Notes under the pieces: model-generated
Told to the model about the DNA's origin: nothing
The model's database searches: none
Seen by the model: only the letters and a program-made list of their open reading frames with translations
Program-made: the position numbers and the translations under genes
Assembly (NCBI GenBank): GCA_038496445.1
Contig: JALMLS010000285.1
Span: 1 to 64,000, forward strand
Reading direction: 5' to 3'
DNA: 64,000 bases
DNA from: Trichosphaerium sp. ATCC 40318
Taxonomy: Eukaryota > Protista > Tubulinea
Shown: piece after piece, positions 14,374 to 53,087 of the stretch
Layout: the number at the start of each line of letters is the position of its first letter
Numbering within the stretch: the stretch's first letter is position 1

Positions 14374-17018
14374 CTACTCATCGTCATCAGTTAATGGACG
14401 ATTTCTGGATGTATTGACGTCTATTAGAGAGCGACGAGGGTGTGCTGCCTCTATGTCATCTTCATCGCTTCTTGGGACACCTTTCTTTGTTTTTTTTGTT
14501 TTGCTAGACCTTAGCTTCGGTGCAGATGGTTTAGAGCCTGAACTTTTAGTAAGATTCATTCGCTTCATTGATTTTACTTTGGCTAACGGGGTAGCTGCAA
14601 GAGGTGGTCTAGAGGTCAAAGTAAACAAGTGTTGAAACGCTACAGACATCACGTACCTTGAGTATGTGCCCTCACTTGTGAATTGATCGATAGTATCGTA
14701 CAGTACTGATATATCAGCGTCGGCAAGAGTTTTGCCAAGTTGGTGACGCTTAAGAATATCTTGAGAAGCGTTTGCTAGATCTTGCAATTTTGCTGCACTG
14801 TCCTTTGTTAAACGACCATCATGAGTAATTTGCTTGGTGCGTTTGATACTCCGCTCCCTGCTTGTGCTTGGTGCATCTGTACTAGTAGTGCCTACTGCGT
14901 ATAGTTGTTTCTTCAATGCTTCAACCTCTTCCTCTCTAAAACACAGTCATTTGTCAGTTTAATTACAAATAATGTACCGCATTGTCAGTACGCTAATGAA
15001 CTTGGGTACGAATAAGCAGCCGGCAGAAAATGATATTATAAGAATGAGACCCTACGTTAACATTGTTGGTAAGCCTGCAAGCGACTGATAGGGCGTACAA
15101 TTGCCCGAACTACAAAAATTGCAGTAGGTTCAAAAGATAAAGACCACTGAATAGCAAGAGTGATTGCACCAATTACAGCTATATTCCAAAGCTAAAAAGG
15201 GCTACGGTGAGTCTTCAAGTATGAGCATTTGAACGTACAATTCTTCCAACCCAAGCTGACTCGTTGAAGAGAGTGTTTACTTTGCGTGTCTTCCATGACA
15301 AGAACAATCCCAATCCAAGAAAAGCGGCCTTAAAATTGGTTATTAAAGTTATTGTTTGAACGAAAATAAGGTACACGTACATTTAGTGCAATAAATGCAC
15401 TACTGAATATGACACCTGCTTCACAATCATTATAGTACTTGTTGACTTGTAGTTTATCGAAGAACCGTTTGGTGTTTGATCTAGGCGGTATTGCAGTCCA
15501 TAAAACAAGTGCAAGCTGCAAGAGTCAAGAATACTTTAACACAATTTCACCAAAGCAAAAAAAGCGGAAGGATACAATTTCAACGGCAATAAATCCTGAA
15601 AGCCACTTTAGGAGATAAATGTCTGGGAGCGCTTTCACAACTAATTTCTTGTTTCCTTATTACAGTATGAGAAATGAAGATAAAGGATTGAGCGTACTGA
15701 ATATTTTGAATACTCTGAAAGTCTTTACAAACAAAGCGCTACAAAAAAGTTAGATAACCAGCTACTCAAAACAAGCACGTGCCCGAATACAGTTATATAA
15801 CCCAATGAAAGTAACCACAAGCGTATGTGACACACAAAAGGTCCCGAAAAGGCATACATAGGTATGCTGGCGGTTGCCATAATGCAACCTGCTACAATTA
15901 TGTAGCAGAATGTTGGGCTTGAGTATCTAATGACGTTAAGTATTGCGAAGTAAGTATTGAATTGTACCTGATAATGGTGTGGTCTCTGTATATGAACAAA
16001 GCAACAAGTGTAACTACAAACAAACGTAAATTATTACTTGGGTGCTTAACTTGTCAAACCTAGTAACGCAATGCCCACTATCCCAACTACTGCCCATATA
16101 ATATACAAAGCAGATACATCAATTTTTACTTCTACAACTACAAGGGAGAATGAGATGAGTTGTGACAACAAGAACCCCTTACGAGCTTCTGTAACCTCTA
16201 CATTTATCATTCCAATTGCAAAGTCATACTGAACACCGCCTTGCAGATTTACCCTGCCGTGTGCGATAATCTAAGTACTATGAGCACTAGTTAACGTAGT
16301 CTGGGTATGTACCGTCCACAATCCAGCTTCCAGGGATACCTCTTGACTGTGCGTATAAGTGTTGCTTGCTGTAAGATTACCTTTTGCTTCTGTTGTGTGT
16401 GTAACAAGCCCTACTTGCTCTACAACATCTGGAGCGCAAAAGCCTAACAAAACACGTTTATTTAACTGACATTAACGAGTTTTTACTTCTACAACGATAC
16501 CTTTCTCTGTCCTGCAACTGTGCACATTTGTATGTGATAACTGGTTTACCTATAGACATGTTTGTTAGGCCACAATTGTGTAAACATGGCGTACCGTTGA
16601 GAAGTTCGAGTACCCAACGTACATTGTATAACTAACGTTTTGAAATGTACCTGCTTCAAATTTTGTAGTTGGTGGTACAACCCAATCAATATTCAGTAAC
16701 GCTGATCCATTTGACGCTGTTGGGCACGAGGACAGTAAGACCTACCAAAGTGTTGGTGTACAACATTCACCAATTTAGTTATGTGTAAAAAAAAACCGCG
16801 ACATAAAACGTGCAATAATGCTGAAGTTGATTAAAACCGCTACAATATTAACTAGGCCATCGTTGTAAAGGAGTATTGCGTACCCTGTCGCCCGTACTAT
16901 CTTGAAGCCAACAAAGGGTTGCAGGACCTCCAAGATTATAGCCAGATCGCTGTGATAGCACCACACAGCAAAGAAATAGTAAAATCACGCAAACACAGTT
17001 GCGTCTATACCAAGCCAT
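14374..17018 (-). CDS. Family C (GABA-B-like, 7tm_3) G-protein-coupled receptor with short non-Venus-flytrap ectodomain
   Basis: Signal peptide (MAWYRRNCVCVILLFLCCVVLS); 7TM motifs SSPTFCYIIVAG, CHIRLWLLSLGYITVFGALFVKTFRVFKIF, LFLSWKTRKVNTLFNESAWVG, CLFVPKF; Ser/Lys-rich cytoplasmic tail. Confidence 0.85.
15516..15575 (-). other. U12-type (minor spliceosome) GT-AG intron in the GPCR gene
   Basis: Donor GTATCCTTC, branch TTCTTGAC ending 8 nt before the 3' splice site (CAG), no pyrimidine tract; retention gives an in-frame TGA, removal restores ..AVEI|LALVLWT. Confidence 0.85.
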
Positions 17019-26641: not shown

Positions 26642-28648
26642 ATGTTACTCGTACTTCTCGTGACTTTGGTTACTGTGTTTGTAGTAGCAACTTACGTTAA
26701 AAACCAGCGAAATAAAGCAAAAAACTTGCCTCCTTCACCGCTAAGTCTTCCAATTATTGGACATCTACACTTATGGACTGATCCAAAACAGATGGTTCAG
26801 TACGCTAGTAGCATTTCACCTATTTGTAGATTGATAGCGAATTAGAACAGCAATGAAATACTCTGAGTCGCTAGGGGGTATCTACAGTATGAGCTTCGCG
26901 TCAAAAGTGGTAAGTGCGAATTAACTTATTATTTTATGGATAAAAAAGGCATAACCCTTGTAATTTGCGCAGATGATCTTTATATCCGACCCTGAGTTGA
27001 TCAAGGAGGCGTTCATAAAGAACCGTGATGTACTATCAGACAGGTGTTAACAAACAAACGTGGATTATGGGCTAATCTTTCATAGAACGTTGAATGATTT
27101 CATAGGGTTGCAACGAAGCATGAGTGGCGGTATTGCTCAAGAAACTTTTATATTGCTATTTTACTAATATAGTTCGCAGGAAGTTTCACGGGTGATAAAG
27201 GACCTGGTGGAGGTTCGTTAAACTTTAATTTTGTAGCATCTTTTCTAACGTGCTTTGAAGCGTCATGCACTTTTTCAGACTACGACAAATACCATAAGGC
27301 TTACCGCTTGTTGTTCAAGAATAAACTAACAACAGGTGAAAGCATGAAGGTTTGTCCCAAATCTAATAACAACATATTCTAAGCTTTGATTCTAGCGTAA
27401 TATCGAAAATATTAAACTAGAAATTAAGGATGCATTACGAAGAGTTAAAGAGCTTTCTGAGAAGGATAAACCTATCACGGGCAGTGATATCTCATCGGCG
27501 ATGACATACAATATGATAACCAAACTACTCTTTGGGATACGTGCATACAAGCATCCTGAAAAAGATTTGTACGATGTAAAGGAAGTAACAGCAGGTTTGA
27601 TGGATTATTTCTTTGTCCCTTTCCTCCAAGATCTCTTCCCTATGTGTGCTCCTCTAGAAACCAAACGGGTATATACTATAATACCAATCTAAAGCTAATA
27701 TGATTAGTTCAACCGCCTCATAGAGTTGGTAAACCAACGTGATAGAATCTTTGGTAAGATTGTAACAGAAGCTCGTAAAACGTTTGATCCAACAAAGACC
27801 CGATACTGGATCGATACTGTTTTGAAGGAAATGCCGGATATAGTAGATGAACAACTTATACCACATATGCAAGAATTCATAGCAGCAGGATATGAGACAA
27901 CATCAACTGCTTTACAAACGTGACCATTTCAAAAACGAAACGAAAGTATTAACGTTTTACTGTAGTGCAATGATCGCTTTGGCTAAAGACCAAGATGTAC
28001 AGCGTAAACTGAGAAGTGCAGTTTCTGGCGTAGACCCACTAAATACGGAATTAAAGGTAAGTACATTAGTTTGAGGGTTTTTTGTTTTGATGAGATTTAA
28101 CTTTTTAACCAAGGATCTGAAAGCTATTACTTATCTTCACAATTTCATTCAAGAAGTTTTCCGTATAGTCCCAATCCTTCCATTAATGGTCCCTCATAAA
28201 GCACGGGAAAATATAAACATTGGTGGATATAATATACCAAAAGGAGTACGGATTATAAAATATTTTTTGTGGAGATTTAATGGATCTGTTTAGGCAATGG
28301 TTTACCCATTCCACAACTACGAGTGTCAAAATAAAATATGGGGTAATCCTCGCGTATTTGATCCTGATAGATGGATAAATCCTCCTGCAGAGATCAACCC
28401 ATTCGGGTACGTCGCAGAAGAAAATGACAACGTGTGTTTTTGATATCTTTGTAAGGCAAGGAGTACGTAGATGTCCTGGTGAACGCATTGCAGTCACAAT
28501 GCTACACAAAGCAATTCCATCATTCGTGCAACATTTTGACTGGAAAGAAACAAGTGTTCCGAACTCGCTAGATGTGATATTCGCAAGCACTCACCAATTT
28601 GTTACTGAACCAAAATTCTTTGCCACCCCTCGGAATCACACAATGTAA
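26642..28648 (+). CDS. Cytochrome P450 (microsomal type)
   Basis: N-terminal TM, LPPSPLSLPIIGHLHL, I-helix AAGYETTS, EXXR (QEVFRIVP), FDPDRW, heme motif PFGQGVRRCPGE. Confidence 0.95.
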
Positions 28649-50337: not shown

Positions 50338-50734
50338 ATGCCGTATACCCTTACCATCTCAGCAATAAAAAACGTAGATAGCATAGAAGATCTATCGATT
50401 CGGCTTGGATTCAAAGGTGCGTACCAACATTTGCGTCGCAGACCACCTGTTGTTGCTTTTAGTAACACGTGTGCTCCGGCATTAAATTATATTTTTTTAA
50501 ATGACCTTAGGAAGCTACTATGACGCCGAGTATGATCTGCAGAAGAAAGAATGGATTATACAGCGTATATCCTGGCCAGTAGGAATAATAGGGACGTTGA
50601 CATTACAATCTGATGGTCTACTATACAGATGCTTTATTCCACATGTTAAAGATAAGAAACGGCGATGGGTAACAATGGAGCGGCAAAAACGTACGATATT
50701 TGGTGTCAAAATGTGGTTTGACATTGATGTTTAG
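50338..50734 (+). CDS. Small hypothetical protein (~100 aa, 2 exons)
   Basis: MPYTLTISAIKNVDSIEDLSIRLGFKG, GT-AG intron, SYYDAEYDLQKKEW..KMWFDIDV*; frame is preserved across the intron. Confidence 0.6.
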
Positions 50735-50974
50735 AAAACTTTGTACAGAGTAACTCACGCACAACCCAAGTACTAATAAAGCTGAAAATATCTAAAGACA
50801 AGTTGAAAAGACAAAGATCTCAAACGTTGTAAAATAAAAAAAACACGTGTATGTGAGTACACTTTAAATGCCCGCAATGCCTAGAATAACAGTTAAAGGA
50901 CGCCGACATCTTATCTAAGACTTAATTCAAGTGGTTTTCTGGCACATAAGTCAACTTCAGGCTACAAAACGTTC

Positions 50975-52659
50975 ATGGCCACTGATGAACCAATTGATTG
51001 GTCCAAATTAGACAGAAAAGCGCGTCGGTACGCATACAGTAAGTTACAAATGTAACCTCGTACAGGAAACTGAAAAAGAAAATAAAACGACAAAATGAAA
51101 AGAAAGCCCTTGCACAAGCACCTGAAACCATAAAAGAACGAGATACTACTGATATAATTGAACGAGAGAAAGCAAATTCAGAAGCCGTTGTTGCTGAGTG
51201 GGAAGCAAGAGAAAATGCGTTCCAAGAGGCTCTTAACAAGCAAAGAGAGGCTGAGAGAGTAGCTAGAGAGGCAAAAGAACGAAAGGTTGATAACTGCATC
51301 CTTAAATTACACTTTTTGTTTTTTATTTAACGTTTTTTCGTACTTCTTAACTCTGCAGACGCGTTAGCATCTAATGATTGCTGTTTTGCAAAAGCGCAAT
51401 GCAATTTCTTTTATCGAAAAACAATAACACGCGTGCACGCCTTATAACATCATTGCAAGAACCGAGAATGGAAAGAGAAACGTGCAGCACGTATAAAACA
51501 AAAAGAAGAACAACGCGCACTTGAAGAGGCTAAACGTGCGGAAGAGCTTAGCGAGACTCATTTACCGTATGCTCCTGAAGGCTACAAAATCAACGAAGAT
51601 GTCTCTGTTGTTTTTGAAGAAATGCCAATGGGCACGCCAGCACCAAACAACGAGCAAGCGTATGATTGGCGCAAGGTATAATAACTTAACAGAGTGTCAA
51701 GAATACTAACTAAAAATTAAAACAAAAAGGATAAATGGAATTGCTCATTTTATATGCGTACAGGCGCTTGTAGATACGGTAACAGCTGTAGCAAGATTCA
51801 CCCAGTGCCAGCGCAGTCTAAAGTAATTGTTATACATGGTTTCTATAGCCATGGGCTTGGCTTAGCTGCTGTATGTCCTCAACACAATATAATTTACTTT
51901 TATCATTTTTATGGAGACTCACTACGATTTAGGTTCATGACAAGGAGGATGACGATCTAGAATATGAAGAGAGCGAACGTTATAAGCACTTTGAAGAGTT
52001 TTTCTATGATGTGTTACCAGAGCTAGAACGTCATGGTAAAATATCAGTTTTACACGTAAGTTTTCTTTTCTTTTTGTTGACTTATTTGTTGGCTTATTAA
52101 ATAACAGATTTGCGAAAACAATGCTTCTCACCTTCGTGGTAATGCTATCATCGAGTATGAGACATTTGAAGCTGCAGAACGCGCTCTGGAAGCAATGGGA
52201 GGTCGATACTACGCAGGTCGCAGTCTGGTTGTTGAGTTCTGTCCAATTCAGGATTGGCGACAAGCAGTTTGCGGTATGCATAGCCGTGGAACTTGTCCGT
52301 GGGGTACGCTATGAGTAGCACTCGCTAAGACTAATTGATGTTTGTATGTAGGCAAAAAATGCAATTTTTTACATGTTTATAAAAATCCACGTGGTTTGTA
52401 CGGAGCTGCTTCACGGGGTCGGCGACCAGACCACTACAGACCTCAACGTGATGAAAAAGAGAACAATAGAAGATATCGACAACATGACAGGCACAGACAA
52501 AGGCCGCCTAGAGATAACAGAAGTAGAGACAGACGAAATGAGCGTCGGAGGAGTAGAAGCCGAGATCGTTCTAGAAAACGAAGGAGAGATATAAGTAAAG
52601 ACAGAACCGGTCACAGGCACCCAGAACGCAAACGTAAACGTACTGATACAAAAACATAA
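50975..52659 (+). CDS. ZRSR2: U2AF35-related protein ZRSR2/URP (minor spliceosome 3' splice-site factor)
   Basis: Long charged N-terminus (absent in U2AF35), CCCH CSFYMRTGACRYGNSCSKIHPVP, UHM DDLEYEESERYKHFEEFFYDVLPEL..HLRGNAIIEY..GRYYAGRSLVVEFCPIQDWRQAVCG, CNFLHVYKNP, RS tail. Confidence 0.92.
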
Positions 52660-53087
52660 CATATATGTGCTACTGCAAGCTTGGCTGAGCTAGTTGTAAA
52701 TAAATTTACTTGCAATACAAGTATTAAAAAAGAGCACGTGTTAGAACAAATATAATTGCGGTACAACAATTATCCGTTCTGAGCAAGGTGGATTTGACAT
52801 TAATAGCAACCTGACAACTCAGTAACTTAAAATACAACATTTATTTTTTTGCAATAAACCATAACGTCTAGAGTTTGTGAAATTTATGAGCCGTTAGGTT
52901 GATTCTAAGAGCTGCAACTTAAACTGTTAATTTGAAACGGTTAGCGCTTGATTAAAGTCTGCAACTCTCCACTCTCGTGTTGATCTTCAATTTGAGTCTT
53001 GCTTTATCATTGTTAATCTCGCGGCTACGTTAGTTGGCACTCGTTCTTCTTCGCCAAAATTGTCGTGTTTGTGAGTTGTAACTGTCT

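Follow-up and report, generated by a model that had tools for sequence, protein, structure and literature searches.

Layout and identity of the gene

The plus strand of the window, by which we mean the whole 64-kb stretch of Trichosphaerium DNA analysed here, carries a transcribed gene whose coding sequence begins with an ATG at 50975, extends over seven exons and ends with a stop codon at 52657-52659 (Table 1). Exons 4-7 encode a first CCCH zinc finger, a UHM/RRM domain, a second CCCH finger and an RS tail, and together with the charged region at the N-terminus they make up the domain layout of ZRSR2/URP proteins: charged N-terminal region, CCCH finger, UHM, CCCH finger, RS tail. Pieces of these exons match the Pfam families zf-CCCH (E 5.8e-09) and RRM_1, and one exon matches, among solved structures, the small subunit of fission-yeast U2AF. 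The only open reading frame called from transcripts, a protein of 273 residues that was found with one of the exons (P0001), has as its best named relatives animal ZRSR2/URP proteins, annotated as [quoted passage not shown]; unnamed proteins of early-branching fungi score highly as well, and the nearest other protein in the collection that was searched shares 42-43% identity with it. Because the best named matches, the zf-CCCH, RRM and RS domains and the ZRSR2-like N-terminus described below all point to the same family, the gene at 50959-52700 is, on homology, a ZRSR2/URP orthologue, which agrees with the name given to it in the initial annotation. The published Trichosphaerium genome measures 70.9 Mb, with a GC content of 37.7% and a mean intron length of 75 nt (PMC10521059); the GC content of the window is about 39%.

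The RNA evidence takes the form of assembled contigs, from which minor isoforms are dropped, in which rare junctions are invisible and from which no isoform ratios can be read. The contig sets X1, X2, X5 and X6 represent four runs from three studies, and the MMETSP/JGI contig L001 is a further data set. Apart from the intron with which this report is concerned, the gene contains five introns, all confirmed by RNA, 38-62 nt in length and with A at position +3 of the donor in five out of five cases.

Table 1. Features of the ZRSR2/URP gene and of its nested intron (positions in the window)
Feature	Position	Strand	Evidence or remark
ZRSR2/URP gene (assigned by homology), transcribed	50959-52700	+	cDNA 5' end at 50959 marked by SMART-oligo loose end (X5 record 9); spliced contigs reach 52700
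Exon 1, coding part	50975-51027	+	ATG 50975; followed by 38-nt intron
RNA-confirmed intron	51028-51065	+	38 nt, GT..AG, seen in X2 and X5
Exon 2, conserved basic/coiled-coil N-terminal region	51066-51285	+	profile score of exons 1+2
Putative outer U2-type intron (aag/GTTGAT .. TTATAAC .. GCAAG/aac)	51286-51459	+	174 nt, phase 0; sequence and homology
Inner U12-type GC-AG intron	51296-51358	+	63 nt; joint 51295^51359 in X5 record 10; motifs
U12-type 5' splice site GCATCCTTAA	51296-51305	+	consensus RTATCCTT; C at +2
U12-type branch site TTCTTAAC	51344-51351	+	7 nt before intron end
Segment retained in every transcript seen, 101 nt	51359-51459	+	X5 record 10, X6 record 12, X1 record 1, L001
In-frame TAA ending the ORF at 123 codons	51445-51447	+	within putative outer branch site TTATAAC (51442-51448)
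Exon 3	51460-51675	+	58 codons open in frame upstream of internal Met; REW motif aligned with EEW of orthologues
Internal ATG, start of sole database ORF (P0001, 273 aa)	51622-51624	+	
RNA-confirmed intron	51676-51729	+	54 nt
RNA-confirmed intron	51871-51932	+	62 nt
RNA-confirmed intron	52056-52107	+	52 nt
RNA-confirmed intron	52304-52351	+	48 nt
Exons 4-7	51730-51870, 51933-52055, 52108-52303, 52352-52659	+	RNA joints; Pfam; translation

An inner intron with U12-type signals

In one SMART-cDNA contig of 1224 nt (X5 record 10), position 51295 is joined directly to 51359, the joint skipping 63 nt with GC..AG ends, with 77 nt of matching sequence on its shorter side, no shared letters and hence no microhomology. 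The joint is carried by one contig in one run, and indirect support for its borders comes from L001, which starts at 51360, one base past the inner acceptor (CTGCAG, 51353-51358). The segment 51296-51358 is a real intron, excised at exactly these borders. A contig from the same sample (X6 record 12) starts at 51338, within the intron, and runs on continuously to 51672, thus retaining the last 21 nt of an intron that X5 has removed; inner splicing is therefore incomplete or variable.

The donor agrees with the U12-type consensus at seven of eight positions, the C at +2 being the sole deviation, and it differs from the five U2 donors of the gene; its ATCCTT motif occurs in a single copy in the gene, and that copy is the one used as donor. 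The branch site likewise matches TCCTTAAC at seven of eight positions and is followed by no separate polypyrimidine tract, its distance from the intron end being slightly under the usual 10-15 nt and of the same geometry as in the window's other U12 intron. GC-AG ends are on record for a U12 intron of the Drosophila gene CG16941 (PMC2831892). By its sequence the inner intron is thus of the U12 type, with a dependence on minor snRNAs that is putative; genes for minor snRNAs were not found within the 64-kb window. The borders, donor, branch site, acceptor and length that the initial annotation had assigned to this unit were all recovered when the sequence was read again.

A combined scan for a U12-like donor, a branch site and an AG or AC end returned only four matches in the 64-kb window, two of which (51296-51358 and 15516-15575 on the minus strand) join a full ATCCTT donor to an AG end, whereas a looser scan for the motifs gave mostly noise. 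The minus-strand match is a 60-nt GT-AG intron of U12 type (GTATCCTT..TTCTTGAC, then 8 nt to the AG), the removal of which keeps a long ORF open (..LLKWLSGFIAVEI/LALVLWTAIPP..). The inner unit had been compared to "two U12 introns elsewhere" of like size, and the minus-strand intron probably represents one of the two, the one that we recovered. A further copy of GCATCCTTAA at 27426, also on the minus strand, was considered as a U12 intron and rejected, as it lies in no convincing coding context.

A premature stop codon in the assembled transcripts

Excision of the inner intron leaves 111 nt (37 codons) in frame with a TAA, giving ..ERK VDN Y ALASND..RVHAL and then the stop, as had been predicted before any transcript was consulted and as our own translation reproduces. 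Removal of the nested intron does take place and yields an RNA with an in-frame stop codon upstream of both CCCH fingers and the UHM/RRM and of four further exon junctions. After the inner joint, X5 record 10 continues without interruption from 51359 to 51672, TAA included, with all downstream introns spliced; X1 record 1 is continuous from 51416 to 51596; and L001, the contig that encodes P0001, passes both the TAA and the border 51459/51460 without a break. That border is crossed unspliced by contigs of four runs (three studies or sources). Either this stop-bearing RNA or its inner-unspliced precursor is what assembles from every data set covering the site, and the stop-bearing RNA is the form that the assemblers recovered, rather than a rare by-product. 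Comparison of the junctions 51295^51359 and 51285^51460, which had been suggested as the check on the nested arrangement, accordingly yields the inner one, in X5, and the outer one in none of the contigs of the four runs, nor in the protein collection. The full-length product of 418 residues is likewise not found among the 5.8 billion proteins of that collection, where P0001, beginning at the internal Met, is the only form, and searches of the collection with exon 2/exon 3 peptides for ORF fragments flanking the junction gave no scoring match. Metagenome contigs, among which the organism is not represented, gave no exact match to the outer junction or to the beginning of exon 3, a result that carries no weight either way.

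Several features of the retained segment may be recorded here. Upstream of the outer acceptor, TTATAAC is the sole motif that resembles a branch site, and its letters would serve a double duty: a branch point when the outer intron is removed, a stop codon when it stays in. Two ACGCGT palindromes (51359-51364, which starts at the inner acceptor, and 51429-51434) flank most of the segment; the window contains 19 copies of the hexamer, where about 8.6 would be expected, and the two copies here pair in the predicted fold, itself no better than those of shuffled sequences. Since neither the 174-nt span nor the 101-nt retained part folds better than shuffles (z +0.5 and +1.5, respectively) and neither matches an Rfam family, the segment conceals no snoRNA or other structured RNA.

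The putative outer intron and the N-terminus

The inner intron lies within a span of 174 nt, from GTTGAT (51286-51291) to CAAG (51456-51459), which is long for this gene and has weak U2-type signals throughout: a donor with T at +3 and A at +5, TTATAAC as the branch site and an AAG acceptor. Both the extent of this span and the weakness of its donor had been described in the initial annotation and stand on re-reading. Joining 51285 to 51460 gives the 418-residue protein, the first 163 residues of which align in order with the N-termini of ZRSR2 orthologues (motifs KK.RRK..RQ, W..RE..Q and EEW), the join between exons 2 and 3 falling between conserved blocks. The alignment was scored against a profile of 23 non-redundant ZRSR2 N-termini that had been collected with P0001; as P0001 lacks the scored region, circularity is avoided. 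Exons 1-3 joined score 22.1 bits (shuffles reach at most 4.3, and 0 of 500 attain the score), exons 1 and 2 score 12.5 bits (0 of 500 shuffles) and exon 3 alone scores 6.0 bits (23 of 500 shuffles), while exons 1-3 with the 37 retained codons between them, for which shuffles were not run, score 9.5 bits.

In view of this N-terminal homology, of the 58 open codons in exon 3 and of the stops or frameshifts to which other pairs of donors and acceptors lead, we infer that a productive mRNA would have to lose all 174 nt, or slightly more if GTAGCT at 51258, an alternative phase-0 donor that may be the productive one, were used instead. The claim that the outer intron is the productive one thus has homology in its favour, which requires the removal, and its junction occurs in no contig of the four runs and in no entry of the protein collection. 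Other joins were worked through by hand and set aside: with the GC donor, the acceptors at 51459, 51466 and 51475 lead to TAA, TAA and TAG, respectively; pairing of the outer donor with the inner acceptor causes a frameshift; and a 27-nt mini-intron (GTGCAC..CAAG, 51433-51459), which would preserve the frame, is too short and falls in a stretch that is unspliced in four runs. Two loci from distant relatives (L002 and L003) belong to other AT-rich organisms with different N-termini and have no bearing on the intron. In the second of these, a Logan contig with the relative's ZRSR2 transcript, the N-terminal frame changes at an A-run upstream of the called ORF (positions 1-140), which is probably a homopolymer error rather than a counterpart of the nested arrangement.

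A possible negative feedback on ZRSR2

The arrangement can be read as negative feedback through competing sites, a reading to which we give slightly less than even weight. A U12-like GC-AG intron is nested 10 nt inside a weakly signalled 174-nt U2-type intron, and binding of U1 at aag/GTTGAT and of U11 at GCATCCTT, 10 nt apart, would be mutually exclusive. Were the major spliceosome to act on the outer sites, the mRNA for the full 418-residue ZRSR2 would result; were the minor spliceosome to act on the inner intron only, the 111 nt would be kept with the TAA in frame, and the RNA would encode a fragment of 123 codons and be expected to be a target of nonsense-mediated decay (NMD) or to be held in the nucleus. 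The exon-junction complex, deposited about 20-24 nt upstream of the new junction, might then mask the adjoining outer donor and commit the RNA to this fate, as such complexes block re-splicing in animals (PMC6224609, PMC8184009). Because ZRSR2 recognises U12-type 3' splice sites (PMC8329584), more ZRSR2, or more minor-spliceosome activity in general, would yield more dead-end RNA, which is the negative feedback that has been proposed for CENATAC. The outer splice, the U12 dependence, the commitment and the feedback itself are the parts of this scheme that we infer. Against it, a stop-bearing RNA that is efficiently degraded should not dominate the assemblies.

A stronger version of the scheme would hold that ZRSR2 is mostly kept "off" by its own activity, in that the nested intron would sense directly how well minor 3' splice sites are recognised, stop-bearing RNA would be made by default and full-length mRNA would arise only when minor-spliceosome capacity falls; it would constitute a feedback loop on ZRSR2 outside animals and plants, independent of both the fly Urp twintron and CENATAC. 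This we put forward tentatively and consider doubtful.

Alternative readings of the nested arrangement

Since both outer splice sites survive, inner splicing need not be terminal, and the two introns may be removed in succession: the U12-type intron first, and the 111-nt remainder (GTTGATAACT/ACGCG..CAAG) later, as a slow, "detained" U2-type intron, with the RNA that we see being a nuclear intermediate. Minor splicing would then be no poison, being neutral or even helpful in that it shortens a 174-nt intron in a genome whose introns measure 40-75 nt. The outer donor and acceptor are indeed intact after inner splicing, the donor is weak in just the respect (T at +3) in which the five others, with A, are not, the RNA that is inner-spliced and keeps the remainder is abundant enough to assemble, the remainder is kept in four runs, as would be expected of a slow step, and the homology requires that a full-length protein be made. 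The end product of such a pathway would, however, carry the junction 51285^51460, which is not seen in the contigs of the four runs either; an exon-junction complex about 20-24 nt upstream would adjoin the very donor that has to be used again; and the sampled libraries are of cDNA, which presumably derives for the most part from mature RNA. On balance we regard successive removal as unlikely, if a serious competitor.

It is less probable still that the 111 nt are never removed at all and that the transcript is effectively bicistronic, the 273-residue core being translated from the internal AUG at 51622 through reinitiation or leaky scanning and the upstream ORF of 123 codons representing a long uORF, a separate N-terminal peptide or an N-terminal extension in decay. 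The product would resemble U2AF35, with the first finger close to its N-terminus; this ORF is the sole one called from transcripts, where MMETSP labels it "complete", and every contig retains the 101 nt. What tells against this reading is the coding sequence upstream, since exons 1-3 fit the conserved N-terminus of ZRSR2 in order and spacing and do so best when joined without the insert, and the 58 in-frame codons before the internal Met are open. Translation from 51622 would moreover have to pass over three other ATGs between the stop and that position (51468, 51569 and 51599), and the first AUG, at 50975, lies 16 nt from the cDNA 5' end.

That the inner intron is a U2-type GC-AG intron which merely looks U12-like, and that we are dealing with ordinary alternative splicing or intron retention with no link to the minor spliceosome, is very improbable: a T-rich tract and a possible TTTAAC branch site (51326-51331) upstream of the acceptor would suit U2AF, but positions +3 to +8 of the donor (act/GCATCCTTAA) read ATCCTT, and a direct reading gives it only two of nine matches to the U1 consensus; the branch motif is separated by 7 nt from the end of the intron, a geometry also found in the window's GT-AG U12 intron; and a chance occurrence of both motifs precisely at the borders of an intron verified by RNA would have a probability on the order of 1e-7, by a rough estimate rather than a computation.

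Relation to known regulatory and nested introns

Read as competing-site feedback, the arrangement is closest in logic to CENATAC and closest by gene to the U2/U12 twintron of dipteran Urp/ZRSR2. In CENATAC, splicing by the U12 path ends in a premature stop and splicing by the U2 path gives the productive mRNA, an arrangement from which autoregulatory feedback has been proposed (PMC8329584). The gene described here likewise codes for a protein of the minor spliceosome, with a minor path that leads to a stop and a major path that would be productive; unlike the introns of CENATAC, which share a single 3' splice site, the U12 intron has a donor and an acceptor of its own inside the U2 intron. The CENATAC element is conserved in vertebrates; ours has GC-AG ends and is found in ZRSR2 of a protist. 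The U2/U12 twintron of insect Urp, mentioned in the initial annotation, is indeed published, for dipteran Urp/ZRSR2 (CG3294; PMC2831892, PMC3291851, PMC3564746). It shares with our locus the gene family and the presence of U2- and U12-type site pairs at one intron position, but in flies the two site pairs are shifted against each other instead of being nested, the two isoforms encode proteins of similar size, and no premature stop has been described. As the fly arrangement is specific to Diptera, the likeness would be convergent, and the nested arrangement in Trichosphaerium is probably of independent origin.

Feedback through U11-binding splicing enhancers (USSEs) in SNRNP48 and RNPC3 was reportedly described by Verbeeren in 2010. 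In these loops, on SNRNP48 (U11-48K) and RNPC3 (U11/U12-65K), binding of U11/U12 to the genes' own pre-mRNA leads to an unproductive isoform, which is subject to NMD or nuclear retention, and to this extent the proposed mechanism is comparable (PMC8329584). A USSE, however, consists of tandem U12 5' splice-site motifs that are themselves unspliced and activate an upstream U2 3' splice site, whereas the ZRSR2 gene has a single motif that is used as a real donor and so does not constitute a USSE. Nested U2 and U12 introns that are alternatively processed by the two spliceosomes are known from the Drosophila prospero twintron and from vertebrate nested twintrons such as that of PRMT1, with a U12 intron inside a U2 intron in six vertebrate cases (PMC3564746); unlike the present one, these give rise to alternative proteins and are not located in a factor of the minor spliceosome.

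A more general parallel is offered by SR proteins and CLK1, with their loops of alternative splicing and NMD through poison exons or retained introns and their detained introns: there too, the transcript of a splicing factor accumulates in a stop-bearing or incompletely spliced form, although those loops use the major spliceosome only.

Significance of the arrangement

To our knowledge, few genes for components of the minor spliceosome are known to be under feedback control, namely SNRNP48, RNPC3 and probably CENATAC, and these only in animals and plants. Here, in a deep-branching protist, the reader of U12-type 3' splice sites itself carries such a site at a position where its use truncates the protein, and the ZRSR2 gene may thus be a sensor of its own machinery. 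Should the loop prove real, competition between U2 and U12 sites would have evolved repeatedly as a means of minor-spliceosome homeostasis, and the locus would be a natural and simple reporter of how active the minor spliceosome is. Leaving feedback aside, it provides a GC-AG intron of U12 type that is verified by RNA, and an essential splicing factor whose sole assembled transcripts cannot encode the full protein.

Variation and repeats along the gene

A number of minor observations concern other parts of the gene. The palindrome CACGTG, of which the window has 39 copies where its base composition predicts about 8.6, is found at 50466, 50844, 52388 and 52735, and thus at both ends of the gene. 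In X6 the last intron is removed with the joint 52303^52348 (44 nt, read GT..AT), whereas X1 and X5 have the 48-nt GT..AG intron; the difference of 4 nt would change the reading frame immediately ahead of the second zinc finger. In the repetitive RS-coding region, one X6 contig skips 36 nt within 52488-52525 (AG..GT ends, 29 nt on one side), which preserves the frame and is probably an artefact of assembly or of the repeat. Finally, one X2 contig diverges from the window in the RS tail (52494-52622), with 6 differences over 129 positions; of the other X2 contigs on the gene, three match the window exactly and a fourth has a single difference. The variant points to another allele, a paralogue or a mixture of strains.
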